Sequence record: OQ383623.1
DNA length: 64,000 nt
Strand: one strand, 5' to 3'
Within the stretch, counting starts at the first letter, position 1. Each line of letters starts with the position of its first letter. The translations under genes and the position numbers were made by a program. Shown one piece after another: positions 3,772 to 13,667 of the stretch. The notes below the pieces were generated by a model. That model ran no database searches, had not been told where the DNA came from, and saw nothing but the letters and a program-made list of their open reading frames with translations.

Positions 3772-4130
3772 TACTACTATTGCTGCTTCTATTGGTAGTC
3801 CACGACATATCCCTCGTGGGTGGGTTCGGCGTGTAACCGAATAAGTTTTTCTGTTCCCAGGGCAACGCACCAGGCTTAAGTGATTTAGTTGGCTAACTAG
3901 GAACAGAAAAGGGAGAACAAACCAGGGCGCGAGGTGGCTCTGGATGGATGCGTAAGAAAAACCCAAACGGCCCTGGCCTGTAAGTTGGCCCGAAGTCACC
4001 GTGTCGGAGGACAGCCCATGCAGGTAGGCGGCAATGGACACGGTGACCGCGGAAGTGGTTCGTGTTACCCTTGACCCGTGTGTGGATACGCGTCTTATTT
4101 CGAATGCCTTCGGGATAAGGATAACACAAA
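3772..4130. ncRNA. Candidate structured ncRNA A
   Basis: Consecutive closed domains: 11-bp 3847-3857/3900-3910, 7-bp 3922-3928/3970-3976, 11-bp 3995-4005/4037-4047, and 4062-4072/4117-4127. Confidence 0.55.
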
Positions 4131-4131
4131 T

Positions 4132-4207
4132 TGGCGACTCTGGCAGGATTTGAACCTGCGACATATGGATTAACAGTCCACCGTTCTACCAGCTGAACTA
4201 CAGAGTC
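4132..4207 (-). tRNA. trnN: tRNA-Asn(GTT)
   Basis: 76-nt cloverleaf GACTCTG...CAGAGTC-G-CCA, anticodon loop CTGTTAA, T loop TTCAAAT. Confidence 0.95.
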
Positions 4208-4217
4208 TTAAAGAGCG

Positions 4218-4289
4218 AGCATGTGACGGGATTCGAACCCGCGAAATATCCGATTATGAGTCGGGTGTTAATTCCTCTAACTTCACTGC
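4218..4289 (-). pseudogene. Degenerate tRNA-Met/Ile2(CAT)-like gene
   Basis: Anticodon loop CTCATAA and T arm GCGGG-TTCGAAT-CCCGT are intact; acceptor stem GCAGTG/CACATGC has a bulge, position 8 is A, no encoded CCA. Confidence 0.7.
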
Positions 4290-4292
4290 TCT

Positions 4293-4361
4293 TGCTTTGA
4301 CCGGACTCGAACCGGCGACCTTCCTCGAAGAGGCTGCTCTACCTACCTGAGCTACAAAGCC
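4293..4361 (-). ncRNA. tRNA-shaped RNA with a truncated anticodon arm
   Basis: GGCTTTG-TA-GCTC-AGGTAGGTA-GAGC-A-GCCTC-TTC-GAGGA-AGGTC-GCCGG-TTCGAGT-CCGGT-CAAAGCA: canonical D, variable and T arms, but a 13-nt anticodon arm instead of 17. Confidence 0.75.
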
Positions 4362-4369
4362 ATTGTTCA

Positions 4370-4760
4370 TGGCATCATGATAGTTACATTCAACGTACCA
4401 CACCCCTACTGGTTTCCGTTTCGGGGGACTTAACCAGACACCATACGTCCAAGGTCGACGCTTAGGTGTGTTATCAGTTGCCTGACTGGAAATCTCTTAC
4501 GAGACGTCTACGTTGAACCGGCAAGCCGGCCATGATGTGAAGATGGGGGAACGCCCAGGCTTCCGCCCAGTCGAGTGAGGTACGAATCCTTCACTCCTGT
4601 CATCACTGATGGTGACAGCGCTCCCATTGTAAGGTGCCGGTGCATCCCGGCGTGTGTTAGTGCATTCAGCTCCCTCGGGCTTATCTGCGGCAACACGTTG
4701 CCCGGCGCACCGACATATACCACAGTAACCTCGTAAAGTCACTCTGGTATTGTTCGTTGC
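4370..4760 (-). ncRNA. Candidate structured ncRNA B (about 390 nt)
   Basis: Nested stems 4373-4379/4531-4537 and 4389-4397/4509-4517; minus-strand GCAA, GTAA and CTTG tetraloops; own promoter at 4760-4787. Confidence 0.65.
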
Positions 4761-4787
4761 ATACTACTAAGTTATCACGTAAACGAT
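4760..4787 (-). promoter_or_regulatory. TAC-N15-TATG promoter driving ncRNA B and the tRNA cluster
   Basis: TTTAC-GTGATAACTTAGTAG-TATG, exact 15-nt spacer as in five other copies. Confidence 0.65.
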
Positions 4788-4794
4788 TTCACCA

Positions 4795-5400
4795 CTTCCA
4801 ATAATTAACCTAAATTCATTTCTGAATGCGGATGATGGACTTCTTCTTCTGAGCCCGGCCGTAAGGTCAGGTCTTAGCGTCTCCAAGCACCACCCGCTAT
4901 CACGTACATTCGTGGCGTACCGGCCGTATGAGGTACCGCGCCTACGGTGACACACAGTCACCCTAACACTGGGAACTCAATCCCATTCGGTTATCAGATT
5001 GTGGATTTACAGGCGTAGCGTGGCGGCTTAATGGGCCGGTGCTTGCCTGTCCCCTAGGGACGGTTGTCGTGGAGACGCCAGTCTGTAAGTGGGGCCCTTA
5101 CGGGAAAACCCATCGCCTGTAAACCAAACATGATTGAATACCCAGAACCGGACGTTGGAAATCAACATCCTGATGTACTGGAGTATTTCATGCATAAACG
5201 TGTCTCGTATCGAATGAGGTTATGACCGGTCAGATACCCAGCATCCTGTACAAGCGACCTGGTGCTTTGTGTACCTGGCTGCTACGGATTTATCGGCTTA
5301 CCGTAGGTCTAAGCTACTACCGGCTCATGCGGGACATCAACCCGCACAATCTGAGTAAGTATCACGGCTCGAATAGGGTTAGTGGGCCGAAGCCCACTGT
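4795..5400 (-). ncRNA. Candidate structured ncRNA C (core about 365 nt, 4991-5358)
   Basis: 10-bp closing helix 4994-5003/5345-5354 around multibranch domains (5006-5015/5114-5123; 5150-5157/5163-5170; 5222-5230/5319-5328); C(UUCG)G hairpin at 5381-5398. Confidence 0.65.
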
Positions 5401-5643
5401 TTAGCCAGCGTTGAACGATTCATGAACGACGGTCCCAGCAGGATAGTGCGTAGTACCGATAAGAGTAACGGTCAGGGTAAGCCCTTCATCCCAGCGCTCT
5501 TTCGGTAACCAGCGGCAGTCCATCCAATGACCACAGTCGGGAGGAATTGCACACGCAGCTTGCTCCGTAGGAGCCGCCACGATTATGGAATCAAATTCAT
5601 CATACCCGATATCGTCAGTTCGTTCTAGCAAGTACAAATTCAT
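5401..5643 (-). CDS. Small hypothetical phage protein
   Basis: GGAG SD before ATG 5643 (MNLYLLERTDDIGYDEFDSIIVAA). Confidence 0.7.
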   Translation of the reverse strand: MNLYLLERTDDIGYDEFDSIIVAAPTEQAACAIPPDCGHWMDCRWLPKERWDEGLTLTVTLIGTTHYPAGTVVHESFNAG

Positions 5644-5707
5644 GTTGTTCTCCAACAGTTGACAAATCTGTGTCTTCTGTGTTGAACCTGAATTCGTTGG
5701 CTAAATG

Positions 5708-5783
5708 TGGCGGGGGCACGAGGTTTCGAACCTCGAACCTTCGGTTTTGGAGACCGGTGCGCTACCAATTGCGCCATACCCCC
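5708..5783 (-). tRNA. trnW: tRNA-Trp(CCA)
   Basis: 76-nt cloverleaf GGGGGTA...TGCCCCC-G-CCA, anticodon loop CTCCAAA. Confidence 0.95.
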
Positions 5784-5876
5784 AGAATTCTTTAAACGTG
5801 TTTATACGGATGCGCTACCCCGTTATCGCAGGCGATTGATGGGGTCAAGCTTGCGTGCTTCTGACTCCCGCATGAT

Positions 5877-6368
5877 TCACCTCCGTAGTTCGTAAGTGCT
5901 AATCTCACCACCGGTGTAGATATCGCATTCGGACGCAATCTCAACAGCACGAACCGCATTCGCGCCCATCTTCATCGCACCCAACGCGTACTCGTAACCG
6001 CTTCCGGTTGCCAGAGGTGGTGTGGCTTCACTCCACCACAACGACACGTCGTCTTCACGCTTCCCACCGACTATCGCTTTCCCTGAGGCCAGAAGCATCA
6101 GGAAAGTAAAATCCATCTTCGCAGGTAACTGCGAGCTTTGTGTTAACCCCTTGTAGCCGGGTCTCAAGCGGACCGTTTCCAGCAGGGCCAATTGTCCTGT
6201 GATGTCGCCGCTTACCCCGAACACCACAATTCGTTCACCGGTAATCCACCACTCCTCGTCAGGAGGACAGACGAATAACTTCTGGGTATTCAGGTTGCAG
6301 ATATTCGACCCACGGGTTAACTGGCCGTCAGCAGCTAAGACTTTTCCATCGAACGCTATCGTGGTCAT
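5877..6368 (-). CDS. HslV/proteasome-beta-like Ntn-hydrolase peptidase
   Basis: N-terminal M-T-T-I-A...LAADGQ and GSGYEYALGAM...AVEIA...D.YTGG motifs. Confidence 0.75.
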   Translation of the reverse strand: MTTIAFDGKVLAADGQLTRGSNICNLNTQKLFVCPPDEEWWITGERIVVFGVSGDITGQLALLETVRLRPGYKGLTQSSQLPAKMDFTFLMLLASGKAIVGGKREDDVSLWWSEATPPLATGSGYEYALGAMKMGANAVRAVEIASECDIYTGGEISTYELRR

Positions 6369-6392
6369 GATTTAATTCTCCGTTTGGTTTAT

Positions 6393-6420
6393 CATACCTC
6401 ACGCAGAATCTGTAAATTTT
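6393..6420 (-). promoter_or_regulatory. TAC-N15-TATG promoter
   Basis: AAAATTTAC-AGATTCTGCGTGAGG-TATG upstream of the HslV-like gene. Confidence 0.65.
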
Positions 6421-7005
6421 AATCAGCCAGGTACCGTCGTTTCTCAACGGGAGTACCCACCCCTCTCGTCTGTTCCGAGCCGGCAAGATATGGACCAACC
6501 TCCTCATCGGAGTTATCCCCCAAGTCTGCGGTTCTACACGCAGACCCCTTTTCGACGCAACGCCGAATTCGAATCAGTTTTGGCCCGACGCCAGAGCGGA
6601 ATCAGCGATAACTATCGGAGGTAAGTTCAACGACGTCTCTCCGCTGCCCAGTCCTCTGGCGCTGCCACGGTCAACTCGGATTTTGTCATGGGTGCGCAGT
6701 CGACTTTCTCGACACTCTCGCAAACCGAACTACGCCCGACGTAGCACCGTCGGCAGGTCGGTTATCTACCGAGTACCTGAATGGGTGGTGATTGTCGGAA
6801 TCCCCGCCGACGCTCACCGGTTCTGTTCCACGGCGAAAGTTTTCCAGAACATAATAAATCACGCAGTGTTAGATTGCGCTTTGTCGAAGACACCACGGCA
6901 GGTATTTTCGAAAAAGCGTCCTGGGTAACAATCCCAGGACTTGGAGCCCTAGTGTGCAGGGTTTAAAAAGTGATTGGACCATTGGCGCGGTCAATCGCTA
7001 TTCGC
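6421..7005 (-). ncRNA. Candidate structured ncRNA D (about 585 nt)
   Basis: No credible ORF; more than 10 hairpins, including 6524-6530/6539-6545, 6589-6596/6654-6661 and 6918-6925/6933-6940; promoter at 7005-7032. Confidence 0.6.
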
Positions 7006-7032
7006 ATATAACAACAAACTCACGTAATCAAA
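7005..7032 (-). promoter_or_regulatory. TAC-N15-TATG promoter driving ncRNA D
   Basis: GATTAC-GTGAGTTTGTTGTTA-TATG, exact 15-nt spacer. Confidence 0.6.
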
Positions 7033-7035
7033 AAA

Positions 7036-7240
7036 TTACCGGCTCGAGGCGTAGGCGTCCAGGAGCCGGTGAGTCACACAGCAGTGAGTCCCTCTGCGGG
7101 GATTTTCGTGGAGCTTGTCGTTGAAATAAAAATCCGTCCCTGGACGGGTTGGTGATGTGGGTCGACTTGTCAGAGTCTGCCGTCCAGGGAGGCGGCCACC
7201 GAAGCTATGGGTTTTGGACATCGAGTGGTGGTCTGAACAC
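7036..7240 (-). ncRNA. Candidate structured ncRNA E (about 200 nt)
   Basis: Stems 7038-7045/7063-7070, 7100-7106/7129-7135 and 11-bp 7137-7147/7180-7190; near-consensus promoter TTTTTTAC-N15-TGTG at 7238-7265. Confidence 0.5.
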
Positions 7241-7294
7241 ACGATAGGGAAACCACGTAAAAAATACACAGGGTACCCAAACTAGGACTTCCGT

Positions 7295-7540
7295 CCGATC
7301 ACGATCTCTTAATAAGGATCACGCGCGCGCCTGCACGCGTTTTAAGATCTTAATATAATATATATTATTATATATTAATATATTTATTTATATAAATAAT
7401 TATAATAATTAAATATAATACCTAAAGGTATTATTATATTTAATATTATTATATATTTTAAAAGATCCTGGAGGATACGGGTGTGCGCACGCGCACGCGT
7501 ATAAGGAAAGGGTCTTCGACCCGATCCACAGGATCAATCT
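7295..7540. other. Origin-like element: AT tract, GATC cluster and alternating purine/pyrimidine flanks
   Basis: 7350-7463 has only 4 G/C in 114 bp; 7 GATC sites in 7297-7535; alternating R/Y runs at 7321-7330 and 7481-7503. Confidence 0.5.
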
Positions 7541-11559: not shown

Positions 11560-13667
11560 TTCATCCTCTGTCGTTGGATTAGCTCTTTCAAGCTTTCCAT
11601 CGATGCGACGTTACGAACGTCAGTGTTGAGTTGAGAGACGAGCGCTTGAATACGATTCTTGTACATGAGCTGTTGTACCGGGTCGGCCACAACTTGACTC
11701 TGTCTAATCATCGTTTCAATTTGCCCCATCAGTTGTTGTTGCTTTTCTTCTTCCTCGACTGCAGCCTCTTCATCGAATTCACCTGCCATGCCCCCGAGCA
11801 TATTGCGGTTGCGCATCATCAGTCGGCTGTTACTTATACCGTAGTGGCCTAAGTTGTTGCCGAACAGAAGTAACCACATTGCCAGAAGCCAGGATATTAC
11901 CAGGTCATCGTGACCGGATGCACGGTGGTCTATGCGCCCGTTTCGTTCGACGAGACCGAGGATTTGGTCGATCAATTCGCCTGACCGCAGTAAGTCCGCA
12001 GAAAGACGCAACGCCGTGGTAAATACTTCACCATACAACTTACGGCGTTTATCCTGGTCGGTTGAGAAACCGATGTATTTACGGAATTTGTCCCAGAAGC
12101 GCTCTGGACTGCCCACAGGGCCACGATGGAACTCTTTGTAAAGTTCATCGTTCCTTGAGTAATCCTGGGTCACTTTCACGTACAAACGACGATGCAAATC
12201 GCGAACCTTAGATTGCAGCTGCAGTATGATGGCATCTGCTACCGAGGAGCCGGTAGACCGTCGTTCCAGAATGAGTACCGTGTTCGGATATTCGATCATG
12301 AAGTCTGCTAAGTGAATCGCAAACCCGATGACGTTTGTTTCGTTCACGGTGAGCTTGCCGGCATATTCGGCAGTGACAGAGTTGACGATTGACATGGCAA
12401 TGGCGTCACGTCCAACGGCTTCGGAAGTATCCAAACCGATGATGTGGCGGTCTTGCATTTTAACCAGCATCTGTTCTTCGGTGTAATACCAATCCGTTAC
12501 GTAGTTGGAAGCAGAGATAATTTTCTGCGCTGCCCGAATACGCGAGGCGTTCATACGTCTTGCATCATCGCCTGAGAACGGTTTGTTGTAACCACCGGTT
12601 GTCCATTCACCACCGAAGTCGCGGCGGATCTGGTCTGGTGTACCTGGGGCGTTCGCAATCATATCTGCGAGTTCTTCGTCCGTGGTACCGAGCTGGCGGT
12701 GGTTGTATTTCACGTAGAACATGATACGTGGAATCTTCGCAGTAGAGCCTTTGCGAATCATGTCAATCAGTTGTGCACGAGTCGGAATGTCGATATACCG
12801 TTCATCCCACGAAATCCCCGACGTCATCAGGCTGTACATGTACTCGCCTTCTTCTGTCGCCAAATCCCCAGGCGTTGTTGCGAAGACGTTGCCGTATGGA
12901 ACACCTTCGGCTTCGTTAATACGACGCGCCGCGGTACCCGATGCTAGTGCAGCAGGGAGGATATGGTGGATGTTGTTGGTAAACGGCCCTTCATCCGAGA
13001 ACAGGCGTCCGGCTGTGAGTCCACGGCCTACCCCGTTCGCAGCTTCCTTATCGTTTTGACCGATGCCGGTGATAAGTTTGTTACCCTGCGCTAGACATGC
13101 AAATGTCTCACGGTTATCAGGATCGTCCGGGTGATGAGGCCAGAGGTAATCCGGTAACGCGTTACGCAGTTGCTTCATCTTGTTAATAGTTTCTTCACGC
13201 AGGGCAGGACCCTTCGTGATAAGAATCGTGCGTGAGTTCTCCAGGAAGCGCATCAGCCACAAAAGCAATGCGGACATCCCGACAGTTTTACCATGCTGAC
13301 GGAGAAACTCGATAGCGGCGTCGATGTTGTTGAAGAAAATCCAATACATCGAAAAGTTACCGCGGTCTAGACGAAACGGCATCCCGTTCTTTACACCATC
13401 CGCAGGGACGCGGACACATTCACGGAAGAAGTACCATGGGTTTTCCGCACACTCCGTAACAATCATCGCTTTTTGTTCGAGTGTTAAATCCGGACTGAAT
13501 GGATCAACACCACGGAGTTCAGGATTGTGTAATGCCAGGTGGACGTACCAGTGCTGGACACCTAATCCTTGTAATGTTGTGGCGAATTGAAGGAAGTGCA
13601 CGTTTGGTGTGACATCGTCAACAATCGCCCCCGGATAGTGTCGCCAATCGTTTTTTCGCAGTATCAT
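11556..13667 (-). CDS. terL: Terminase large subunit
   Basis: Walker A RQHGKT, Walker B LFSDEG, nuclease IIGLDTS and HDDLVISW; phiKZ gp25-like. Confidence 0.92.
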   Translation of the reverse strand: MILRKNDWRHYPGAIVDDVTPNVHFLQFATTLQGLGVQHWYVHLALHNPELRGVDPFSPDLTLEQKAMIVTECAENPWYFFRECVRVPADGVKNGMPFRLDRGNFSMYWIFFNNIDAAIEFLRQHGKTVGMSALLLWLMRFLENSRTILITKGPALREETINKMKQLRNALPDYLWPHHPDDPDNRETFACLAQGNKLITGIGQNDKEAANGVGRGLTAGRLFSDEGPFTNNIHHILPAALASGTAARRINEAEGVPYGNVFATTPGDLATEEGEYMYSLMTSGISWDERYIDIPTRAQLIDMIRKGSTAKIPRIMFYVKYNHRQLGTTDEELADMIANAPGTPDQIRRDFGGEWTTGGYNKPFSGDDARRMNASRIRAAQKIISASNYVTDWYYTEEQMLVKMQDRHIIGLDTSEAVGRDAIAMSIVNSVTAEYAGKLTVNETNVIGFAIHLADFMIEYPNTVLILERRSTGSSVADAIILQLQSKVRDLHRRLYVKVTQDYSRNDELYKEFHRGPVGSPERFWDKFRKYIGFSTDQDKRRKLYGEVFTTALRLSADLLRSGELIDQILGLVERNGRIDHRASGHDDLVISWLLAMWLLLFGNNLGHYGISNSRLMMRNRNMLGGMAGEFDEEAAVEEEEKQQQLMGQIETMIRQSQVVADPVQQLMYKNRIQALVSQLNTDVRNVASMESLKELIQRQRMK

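Follow-up and report, generated by a model that had tools for sequence, protein, structure and literature searches.

Clade-restricted structured RNAs, an overlooked small gene and tRNA look-alikes in the tRNA-gene island of SPN3US-like jumbo phages

The window analysed here is a stretch of 64,000 nucleotides (nt) from sequence record OQ383623.1, and this study concerns the 3.5-kb interval running from position 7265 to position 3772, in which all genes and RNA features are encoded by the minus strand. The sequence of this interval matches that of Salmonella jumbo phage MET_P1_082_240 (OQ383623; Seoulvirus, SPN3US-like) at 100% identity, whereas SPN3US and the phages closest to it match at 90-99%. 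Sequence comparison established three structured RNA families at this locus, hereafter A, U and D, which are new and restricted to one phage clade, though of a known general kind, together with tRNA mimics. U and D frame an unannotated small open reading frame (sORF). As judged from its counterparts in related genomes, the locus is a tRNA-gene island, belonging to a nucleus-forming jumbo phage of the SPN3US-like group, from which most tRNA genes have gone. Over 7265..3772, the public OQ383623 record holds four annotations only, an HslV-family peptidase gene, tRNA-Trp, a gene for an 80-amino-acid (aa) protein and tRNA-Asn, and leaves ~2.3 kb without annotation. In minus-strand order, these genes and the elements described below are:

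6420-6674, minus strand: A RNA, multi-helix, ~255 nt, 5' TTGACCGTGGCAGC to GGTACCTGGCTGATTA 3' (alignment and covariation)
5877-6368, minus strand: HslV-family peptidase coding sequence, 163 aa (phrog_1040, E 2.9e-38; annotated in relatives)
5708-5783, minus strand: tRNA-Trp (CCA) (ARAGORN; Rfam 65.6 bits)
5401-5643, minus strand: 80-aa coding sequence, annotated in OQ383623 (phrog_5444, E 1.4e-36)
5193-5353, minus strand: U domain, ~160 nt, five helices (MAFFT alignment and RNAalifold; covariance model 146 bits)
5028-5195, minus strand: sORF, 55 aa (MHEILQYIRMLISNVRFWVFNHVWFTGDGFSRKGPTYRLASPRQPSLGDRQAPAH), not annotated in OQ383623 (conserved frame; phrog_26199)
4826-5105, minus strand: D domain, ~280 nt, from inside the 3' half of the sORF (alignment, RNAalifold and covariation)
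4547-4625, minus strand: B2, cloverleaf-like four-way junction (fold z-score -2.85)
4362-4543, minus strand: 'mid', lineage-specific insertion of 182 nt, conserved only among near-identical phages
4292-4361, minus strand: TL1, tRNA-like, without anticodon loop (Rfam tRNA 39.9 bits; not called by ARAGORN)
4218-4289, minus strand: TL2, sub-canonical tRNA(CAT) (Rfam 31.9 bits; cloverleaf fold with CAU loop)
4132-4207, minus strand: tRNA-Asn (GTT), the final tRNA of the cluster in all relatives (ARAGORN; Rfam 75.6 bits)
3990-4130, minus strand: C1, two long hairpins (4130-4059 and 4053-3990) directly 3' of tRNA-Asn (fold z-score -4.8)

A preliminary description, made from the letters of the window alone, had presented the interval as an island of large ornate non-coding RNAs (ncRNAs). 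It had remarked on an unusual scarcity of coding sequence and an abundance of stable helices, which was borne out, and the UUCG and GNRA (and GGAA) hairpin caps to which it had drawn attention are visible in the sequence; one UUCG-capped hairpin lies at 5398-5381, directly after the 80-aa coding sequence. Its statement that no credible coding sequence is present held only in part: the interval is poor in coding, but it contains the HslV gene, the 80-aa coding sequence and the conserved 55-aa sORF. These three protein-coding frames had been missed, as had the origin of the locus in a tRNA cluster. What it had observed was nevertheless right for the most part, and the covariation analysis that it had proposed as a check gave strong signals for three RNAs, A, U and D.

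Relatives were gathered from an annotated phage collection and with a DNA pattern. They belong to Seoulvirus (SPAsTU, pEa_SNUABM_29), Erskinevirus (phiEaH2, Asesino), Machinavirus (Machina, Huxley, ChrisDB, Caitlin, pSal-SNUABM-04, pEa_SNUABM_4/6/9/10) and Wellingtonvirus (pEa_SNUABM_11, Kwan); the pEa_SNUABM names are shortened below to pEa29 and the like. In a distant blastn search of 50,697 phage genomes, A, U and D were found only in SPN3US-like and Erwinia jumbo phages, and pattern scans of IMG/VR returned 9-12 contigs, mostly full-length (~240 kb) with a few shorter ones. Searches with nhmmer detected one copy of each element per related genome (A at 6672..6421 and D at 5120..4819 in the window) and no element in 78 unrelated HslV loci or in two contigs of bacterial/archaeal metagenome-assembled genomes (MAGs). 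The unrelated loci came from an HslV protein search of IMG/VR, which gave mostly such loci, and were reused as negative controls. The two MAG contigs (L121 and L122) had matched a loose D pattern, for which ~2 matches are expected by chance; they were negative with nhmmer and with the U covariance model and were rejected. Taken together, the alignments show that A, U-sORF-D, B2, TL1, TL2 and C1 are conserved in Seoulvirus, Machinavirus, Erskinevirus, Wellingtonvirus and uncultured relatives, with base pairs kept by compensatory change.

The alignment of A comprised 13 non-redundant sequences of ~255 nt from four genera and from metagenomic jumbo-phage contigs. RNAalifold returned 37 pairs, 16 of which carry compensatory double changes; 96.2% of the cells at these pairs are paired, the figure for column shuffles being 87.2%. 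For covariation the score was 0.392, compared with 0.224 for the shuffled alignments (0/500 reached the observed value) and with 0.05-0.10 when the partners were slid by 1-3 columns. The stretch TCTTGGCGGCTCGGAA-AGACGAGAGGGG is invariant in all aligned sequences, and the 3' hairpin covaries strongly. The alignment contains indels of 1-2 nt, which rule out coding for A. The conserved core was found by distant blastn upstream of HslV in ~20 Erwinia phages; since the predicted promoter P4 (6415..6393, see below) lies between A and the HslV gene, A is not the leader of that gene. In Kwan and Wellington, an HNH homing-endonuclease gene is inserted in a peripheral hairpin of A, with both RNA flanks kept. 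The interrupted A RNA gene is located at 714-1569 in Kwan (L111) and at 12218-13073 in Wellington (L120), and nhmmer aligned the 5' part of the interrupted RNA to profile positions 2-178 and the 3' part to positions 135-246. Just upstream of that HNH gene there is a sub-threshold match to the Rfam int-alpA RNA (31 bits versus a gathering score of 35.8).

The block 5353..4826 (~530 nt), bounded by the 80-aa gene on one side and by the promoters at 4782/4736 on the other, splits into three parts, U, sORF and D, all of which are present in 23 of the 23 relatives examined, six of these being IMG/VR contigs found by the conserved pattern. A covariance model of U built from 19 sequences matched exactly one copy per related genome (113-164 bits) and nothing else in the window, and gave no match in 11 unrelated HslV loci or in the two MAG contigs. 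In the model-based alignment, 96.4% of the cells are paired, against 75.8% after shuffling, and 21 of 31 pairs show compensatory changes; the covariation score reached 0.625 versus 0.200 for shuffled alignments (0/500 reached it) and 0.06-0.09 for slid controls. An independent MAFFT alignment gave a comparable result (0.581 versus 0.209 shuffled). The U fold stops at the ATG of the sORF in all 19 aligned sequences and closes with a small hairpin over a purine-rich, Shine-Dalgarno-like region right before this codon. This terminal hairpin is formed on the AGGTGA/GAGAG purines and has only 3-4 base pairs (bp); it occurs in compatible variants (CTCA/TGAG, CTTA/TGAG, ATTA/TGAT and ACC/GGT), and no alternative pairing was established for it.

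The frame of the sORF is open in 23/23 relatives, over 55-64 aa, and some of these genomes annotate a hypothetical protein there. All 23 use the same TAA, which lies within the loop of a conserved hairpin, and the indels of the multiple alignment are of 3 or 6 nt. The protein itself is rare, matching just 7 clusters among 5.8 billion. In within-group comparisons, the N-terminal 27-34 codons showed 165, 105 and 239 differences at positions 1, 2 and 3, with 116 synonymous codon changes, a pattern that, at the level of sequence, is a coding signature. In the C-terminal ~29 codons the corresponding numbers are 75, 44 and 85, with nucleotides far more conserved, as is characteristic of constraint on the RNA. 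The last ~28 codons of the sORF double as covarying hairpins of D. The U-sORF-D block is not a pure ncRNA but encodes a conserved protein of 55-64 aa, whose translation is predicted.

D extends ~200 nt beyond the stop codon of the sORF and finishes in a long irregular helix (GCGGGTGGTGCTT ... AAG-TC-CATCATCCGC). The hairpins that lie within the sORF keep their pairing despite sequence change: CCC-GTAA-GGG in some genomes is CTC-GTGA-GAG in others, and GTCCC/GGGAC is replaced by TCAC/GTGA or GTCTA/TAGAC. RNAalifold returned 42 pairs for D, 14 of them compensatory, with 98.3% of the cells paired versus 89.6% after shuffling; the covariation score was 0.281 versus 0.116 shuffled (0/500 at or above the observed value), and slid controls gave 0.03-0.06. 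In Asesino (tRNA-Gly) and phiEaH2, 7 nt separate D from the start of the following tRNA gene, which implies that D is co-transcribed with tRNAs there and that its 3' end would be set by RNase P. To reach the end of the sORF, a ribosome would need to open up the 5' half of D, so that any one molecule should be unable to hold the complete D fold while being translated.

Several further pairings within this module were considered. In the window phage, CAGATTGTG at the 5' flank of U (5353-5345) is perfectly complementary to an invariant segment of D, CACAATCTG (4999-4991). The corresponding 9-bp pairing of ACAATCTGA with CAGATTGTG, seen in the minimum-free-energy fold, was set aside as the partner is not conserved across genera; in Erskinevirus the same invariant D 9-mer matches, and can pair with, the WLSG codons of the sORF, TCAGGATGTGGG, instead. 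A long-range pairing of CAAGCACC with GGTGCTTG in D was discarded on account of two independent uncompensated changes (Machina and the pEa4 group); RNAalifold prefers to pair GGTGCTT with AAG-TC-CATC. A kissing interaction between ACACA of U and the UGUGU loop of D was likewise dropped, as SPAsTU, pEa29 and L097 alter the loop without compensation. The pairing of the WFTG codons, TTTACAGGCG, with CGCCTGTAAA (10 bp) is a possible alternative structure that competes with the covarying helix ACAGGC/GCCTGT (GAAGGT/ACCTTC in the Erskinevirus type). Two resemblances to catalytic RNAs did not withstand scrutiny: AGACGCTAAGACC / AAGAAGAAGTCC read as group I intron R and S elements have an inconsistent helix order and nothing in Rfam to match, and the P4-like appearance of the 3' helix of D (AAG-UC-CAUC with GGUGCUU) to RNase P is a resemblance only, with the strand order reversed and no model match.

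TL1 and TL2 score above the gathering threshold of the Rfam tRNA family (29 bits). Neither has the canonical layout, in which a stem of 5 bp carries a 7-nt anticodon loop and the acceptor stem is paired throughout. TL1 has orthologues in all genera. Its acceptor stem covaries (GGCTTTG/CAAAGC, GGCTCCG/CGGAGC, GGTTTCT/AGAAAC, GGTCTTT/AAGGAC), every orthologue has a G.A mismatch at position 1-72, and the T arm has the canonical form. In place of the anticodon arm, this phage has a 4-bp hairpin with a 3-nt loop, and this central hairpin is variable, with a GNRA loop in phiEaH2 and an insert of 30-70 nt in SPAsTU, Asesino and Machina. Genes of 97-121 nt annotated as 'tRNA-Ile(aat)' in Asesino (L088, 4307-4427), Machina (L095, 5305-5401) and Huxley (L096, 5308-5404) are orthologues of TL1 and thus probably mis-annotated. 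Directly before the initial G of TL1, almost every genus has a conserved leader, (C)AAACAATG (window 4362-4370), which is possibly a processing signal. In all relatives tRNA-Asn is preceded by a tRNA-Met/Ile2(CAT), to which TL2 is orthologous. The acceptor stem of TL2 has a bulge in this phage, where ARAGORN makes no call; the Asesino copy is called as tRNA-Met. TL1, TL2 and tRNA-Asn always abut, with a fixed AAGA spacer between TL1 and TL2.

B2 occupies a tRNA-sized slot, which in Asesino lies between tRNA-Ile and tRNA-His. It consists of a 7-bp closing stem and three hairpins, one with a GGAA cap, is 83-95% identical in SPAsTU, Asesino and pEa29, and shows compensatory changes in hairpin 2 (GAGTGA/TCACTC, AAGTGA/TCACTT, GACATG/CATGTC). 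For C1, none of 200 shuffles folds as well; a T-rich run follows the hairpins near 3962-3952, and the element is 72-83% conserved in Caitlin, ChrisDB, pEa9 and Asesino. An additional, unannotated tRNA-like gene was noticed just upstream of TL1 in Machina (L095, ~5220-5300) and in the same place in pSal-SNUABM-04 and pEa_SNUABM_10; the Machina gene reads GTTTCC...CGTGGTTCAACTCCATGGGAAAC-A-CCA, so that its CCA end is encoded, and its central arm is odd. The annotations of these phages seem to fall short of the number of non-canonical tRNA-like genes present.

The counterpart of the locus in more distant relatives is a tRNA-gene cluster with 7-17 members, of which tRNA-Asn is always the last. Relative to SPAsTU, the entire tRNA-Tyr...Gln block has been lost from the window phage, with the deletion junction at 4631, and HNH homing-endonuclease genes occur at varying points of the locus in phage 1252, pEa29, pEa6 and Kwan. 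The tRNA cluster of the relatives, the loss of the tRNA block and the HNH insertions together identify the 'RNA island' as a decayed tRNA island trafficked by endonucleases. The insertion 'mid' (4543..4362) was found only in phage 1252-type relatives, B2 and 'mid' both being missing from SPN3US, and 'mid' is probably a decayed remnant. Inserted open reading frames (ORFs) are present or absent even among Seoulvirus genomes that are 97-98% identical, and the locus is a hotspot of mobile endonucleases: HNH/NUMOD4 genes lie at 1867-2406 in phage 1252 (L002) and also in pEa29 and pEa6 (L085 1823-2359; L093 5827-6345), and phage 1252 carries at 4619-5194 an inserted 191-aa ORF without Pfam match.

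The preliminary description had proposed that phage-type promoters flank the RNAs, which are interleaved with canonical tRNAs (Asn, Trp) and genuine tRNA look-alikes. This arrangement was confirmed, as were its promoter sites at 7005 and 4760 and its near match TAC-N15-TGTG at 7259..7238; the TTAC-N15-TATG sites at 6415..6393, directly upstream of the HslV gene, and at 4736..4714 had not been listed. The predicted signals, and the two small units that they delimit, are:

7238-7259, minus strand: P1, TAC-N15-TGTG variant (TTTTTTACGTGG...TGTG) (sequence; conserved in SPAsTU and pEa_SNUABM_29)
7125-7237, minus strand: R1, candidate small RNA of ~100 nt ending in an intrinsic terminator (terminator scan; fold z-score -1.7)
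7030-7068, minus strand: T2, hairpin CCGGCTC...GAGCCGG with TAATTTTTT after it, resembling a terminator and lying directly ahead of P2 (sequence)
7005-7027, minus strand: P2, TTAC-N15-TATG, predicted start G7005 (motif scan)
6911-7005, minus strand: R2, three-hairpin candidate small RNA of ~93 nt (fold z-score -3.4; 1/200 shuffles folds as well)
6393-6415, minus strand: P4, TTAC-N15-TATG, 25 nt upstream of the HslV start codon (motif scan; position conserved in relatives)
4714-4782, minus strand: P5 (4782..4760) and P6 (4736..4714), tandem TTAC-N15-TATG sites, aimed at the remnant tRNA operon

TTAC-N15-TATG occurs seven times in the window, always on the minus strand, compared with 1.49 expected occurrences, and 0/100 shuffles reach seven; four of the seven sites lie inside the interval (7027..7005, 6415..6393, 4782..4760 and 4736..4714). 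The 15-nt spacing is specific, as the minus strand holds 10 TAC-N15-TATG sites and 0-3 at other spacings. P5 is conserved in SPAsTU and pEa29, where it stands ahead of the tRNA-Tyr...Gln block. The promoters of phiKZ, with TTAC near -24 and TATG providing G as +1, were shown biochemically (PMC4666361). The sites described here resemble these middle and late promoters of the multisubunit RNA polymerases, in which TTAC is centred at ~-24 and the final G of TATG is the start (PMC4666361), but they belong to another phage genus and extend to TTTACGTGA...TAGTATG. By analogy, we infer that they are promoters in this phage.

The R1 terminator has a stem of 7187-7178 with 7147-7138 followed by a T-run at 7133-7125; the terminator scan found its inner part, 7147..7134, and the stem is maintained through sequence change in SPAsTU and pEa29. 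The last hairpin of R2 (6940-6918), followed by TTTTT, was identified by the same scan as an intrinsic terminator, and R2 is ~90% conserved among three Seoulvirus lineages. The T2 stem is kept with altered sequence in SPAsTU and pEa29; it was missed by a simple terminator scan because its loop exceeds 8 nt. R1 and R2, two small units each running from a predicted promoter to a predicted terminator, are conserved within Seoulvirus. Next to the interval, at window positions 7320-7510, lies ~130 bp of nearly pure A+T (GC 0.28 in a 300-nt window) with many overlapping palindromes, flanked by the GC-rich near-repeats GCGCGCCTGCACGCGT / GCGCACGCGCACGCGT and by AAGATCTT motifs. The numbering of many deposited genomes of this phage group begins within ~100-300 bp of this stretch, which is a candidate replication origin or packaging-related site.

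The RNAs were compared with known families. In cmscan searches of the window and of the loci of nine relatives against Rfam 15, at the gathering threshold and at E<=5-10, only tRNA-type matches were found, so that by these models A, U and D belong neither to GOLLD, ROOL or OLE nor to RNase P, tmRNA, SRP or introns. The preliminary description had likewise seen no RNase P, tmRNA, SRP or group I intron, and ARAGORN made no tmRNA call. Weak matches to YrlA, Plastid-ycf2 and mascRNA were rejected, as all lie over tRNAs and far below threshold. Literature searches retrieved no paper describing A, U, D or the associated RNAs.

The closest parallels come from systems of other kinds. The tRNA gene cluster of phage T4 encodes non-tRNA stable RNAs, namely the species 1 and 2 RNAs, rnaC/rnaD. 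As in T4, structured RNAs that are not tRNAs are located here inside a phage tRNA cluster, they are presumed to be co-transcribed with the tRNAs and released by tRNA-processing enzymes, and the cluster is a landing site for homing endonuclease genes. The elements lie within the cluster and abut its tRNAs: in Asesino, D is 7 nt from tRNA-Gly and B2 stands between two tRNAs, and TL1, TL2 and tRNA-Asn are contiguous. Unlike those of T4, these RNAs are larger and multi-branched, one contains an ORF, and processing is here only presumed; homology to rnaC/rnaD was not detected, as the distant blastn search of the 50,697 phage records gave only SPN3US-like and Erwinia jumbo phages. U-sORF-D recalls the dual-function RNAs RNAIII/hld of Staphylococcus aureus and SgrS/SgrT in combining a long structured RNA with a small peptide and in the overlap of structure and coding region; the sORF is conserved with a codon-position bias, and covarying hairpins overlap its 3' half. 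It differs from them in that there is no homology, the domains flank the ORF or overlap its 3' end, and translation is predicted. U shares with riboswitches and translational operators a conserved fold of several helices, in which nucleotides of junctions and loops are invariant and the peripheral stems vary in length. It also shares their location: this covariation-supported, aptamer-like fold lies in a gene's 5' leader, and the ORF that directly follows has its ribosome-binding purines in a hairpin. In contrast to riboswitches, U matches no Rfam riboswitch class, its expression platform is weak, and the downstream gene has no metabolic annotation.

From these comparisons of sequence, we consider it probable that the locus yields co-transcribed stable RNAs processed by tRNA enzymes, together with a structured and translationally controlled mRNA for a small protein. 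That the RNAs are expressed from phage promoters and matured by tRNA enzymes, and that translation of the sORF is controlled, is what we infer. The phage's own RNA polymerase would start at TTAC-N15-TATG, with G as +1, to give polycistronic precursors, from which host tRNA-maturation enzymes would excise the tRNAs and tRNA-like units, RNase P acting at each tRNA 5' end. Excision of the tRNAs would fix the ends of the adjoining structured RNAs, and the outcome would be stable, discrete RNAs, by analogy with the non-tRNA stable RNAs of the T4 tRNA cluster. U would be a 5' element that binds a ligand or protein and governs access of ribosomes to the sORF, and D a nuclease-resistant 3' body of the message. 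As D would fold fully only when the sORF is not translated, the module would alternate between an mRNA state and a structured-RNA state.

A number of observations weigh against this interpretation. Promoters, start sites, terminators and processing sites are predictions throughout; none of the promoters found stands immediately before U, and the one ahead of A in this phage is weak. In Machinavirus, as in the window phage, D is followed by a promoter and not by a tRNA, so that RNase P cannot define the 3' end of D everywhere. The hairpin over the Shine-Dalgarno-like purines is short and loosely conserved (3-4 bp), and the likeness to the T4 stable RNAs is drawn from general background. Finally, as single sequences A and U-sORF-D fold unremarkably (z = -1.6 relative to shuffles for A and -2.4 for U-sORF-D). 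Fold energies of single sequences are just modestly beyond those of shuffles, so the evidence for structure lies in the comparison of genomes and not in the helices of one sequence.

The preliminary description had favoured a set of cooperating, free-standing, large ornate ncRNAs of the GOLLD/ROOL type, acting in trans as a scaffold, as a decoy for RNA-targeting defences or as a modulator of translation. The RNAs are indeed real and conserved, they lie beside tRNAs and are flanked by phage promoters, and TL1 and B2, having no decoding loop, are plausible decoys for tRNA-directed nucleases; GOLLD and ROOL are moreover linked to phages and prophages, are often found beside tRNA genes and have complex conserved folds. 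Kinship with them was not upheld, however, since neither these nor OLE nor any other large ncRNA of Rfam matches even at E<=10, and the elements measure 160-280 nt, a quarter to a third of the size, as compared with 600-800 nt. Even against a range of ~500-800 nt for a single non-coding fold, A (~255 nt), U (~160 nt) and D (~280 nt) fall short, and the 530-nt U-sORF-D does not qualify because of the conserved ORF inside it. The hosts differ too, the phages here being enterobacterial jumbo phages whereas GOLLD and ROOL belong to phages of Firmicutes or gut anaerobes. Neither the count of five RNAs nor their boundaries held. One 'RNA' is a structured mRNA with a conserved, translated-looking small ORF, and the data give no support to joint action. 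We therefore regard this explanation as unlikely. Somewhat less doubtful, if still not what we would expect, is a purely cis-acting role, in which A, U, D, C1, R1 and R2 are structures of untranslated regions, attenuators, terminators or processing and stability signals, without function in trans and without an accumulating product. U is immediately 5' of an ORF, D and C1 are at 3' ends, the R1 and R2 terminators stand just ahead of further promoters in an attenuator-like manner, and helices at the ends of messages commonly aid stability. This does not sit well with A, which is bracketed by promoters, is not adjacent to the gene that it would need to control and stays intact in relatives where extra genes or an HNH gene intervene, nor with the invariant multi-helix cores, whose conserved loops and junctions go far beyond what stability requires.

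It is very improbable that the locus is mere debris of decaying tRNA genes and scars of homing endonucleases. A tRNA-gene block has clearly been lost in this phage, the 182-nt 'mid' is lineage-specific, HNH genes come and go at the locus among relatives, and the acceptor stem of TL2 is damaged; but A, U, D, B2 and TL1 are kept in four genera at 50-60% overall nucleotide identity with their helices compensated. The compensated helices of A, U, D and TL1 contradict decay there, and debris stands as an explanation for 4543..4362 only. That the non-coding blocks encode further small proteins is hardly credible. The 55-aa sORF was indeed overlooked in the annotation of this phage, and 'hypothetical protein' calls are scattered over A and D in relatives, but the indels of A and of D after the stop codon are not multiples of three, no frame is open across genera, and the ORFs annotated over A and D differ between genomes, the sORF being the sole conserved frame.

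A bolder interpretation can be offered only tentatively and is itself unlikely as a whole. A, U and D might be three undescribed functional RNA classes of the nucleus-forming jumbo-phage clade, with U a new riboswitch or protein-operated switch and U-sORF-D a bistable messenger and structured RNA, while A, D and TL1 might act in trans, for instance as partners or decoys of tRNA-processing or tRNA-cleaving enzymes or as ribonucleoprotein components required to deal with RNA on its way out of the phage nucleus.

Much work has gone into the cell biology of nucleus-forming jumbo phages and into their evasion of defences, yet to our knowledge almost nothing is known of their non-coding RNAs. Three covariation-supported RNA families absent from Rfam are now defined, as is a family-wide tRNA mimic without anticodon loop that is sometimes mis-annotated as an intron-containing tRNA-Ile, and an unannotated small gene has been found whose coding sequence doubles as RNA structure. 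The elements are testable in tractable systems such as SPN3US on Salmonella LT2. If they are only processing or stability signals, the annotation of ~30 phage genomes is still corrected; should a ligand, a host tRNA enzyme or a defence nuclease prove to be bound by any one of them, this would open up a further layer of phage-host interaction.

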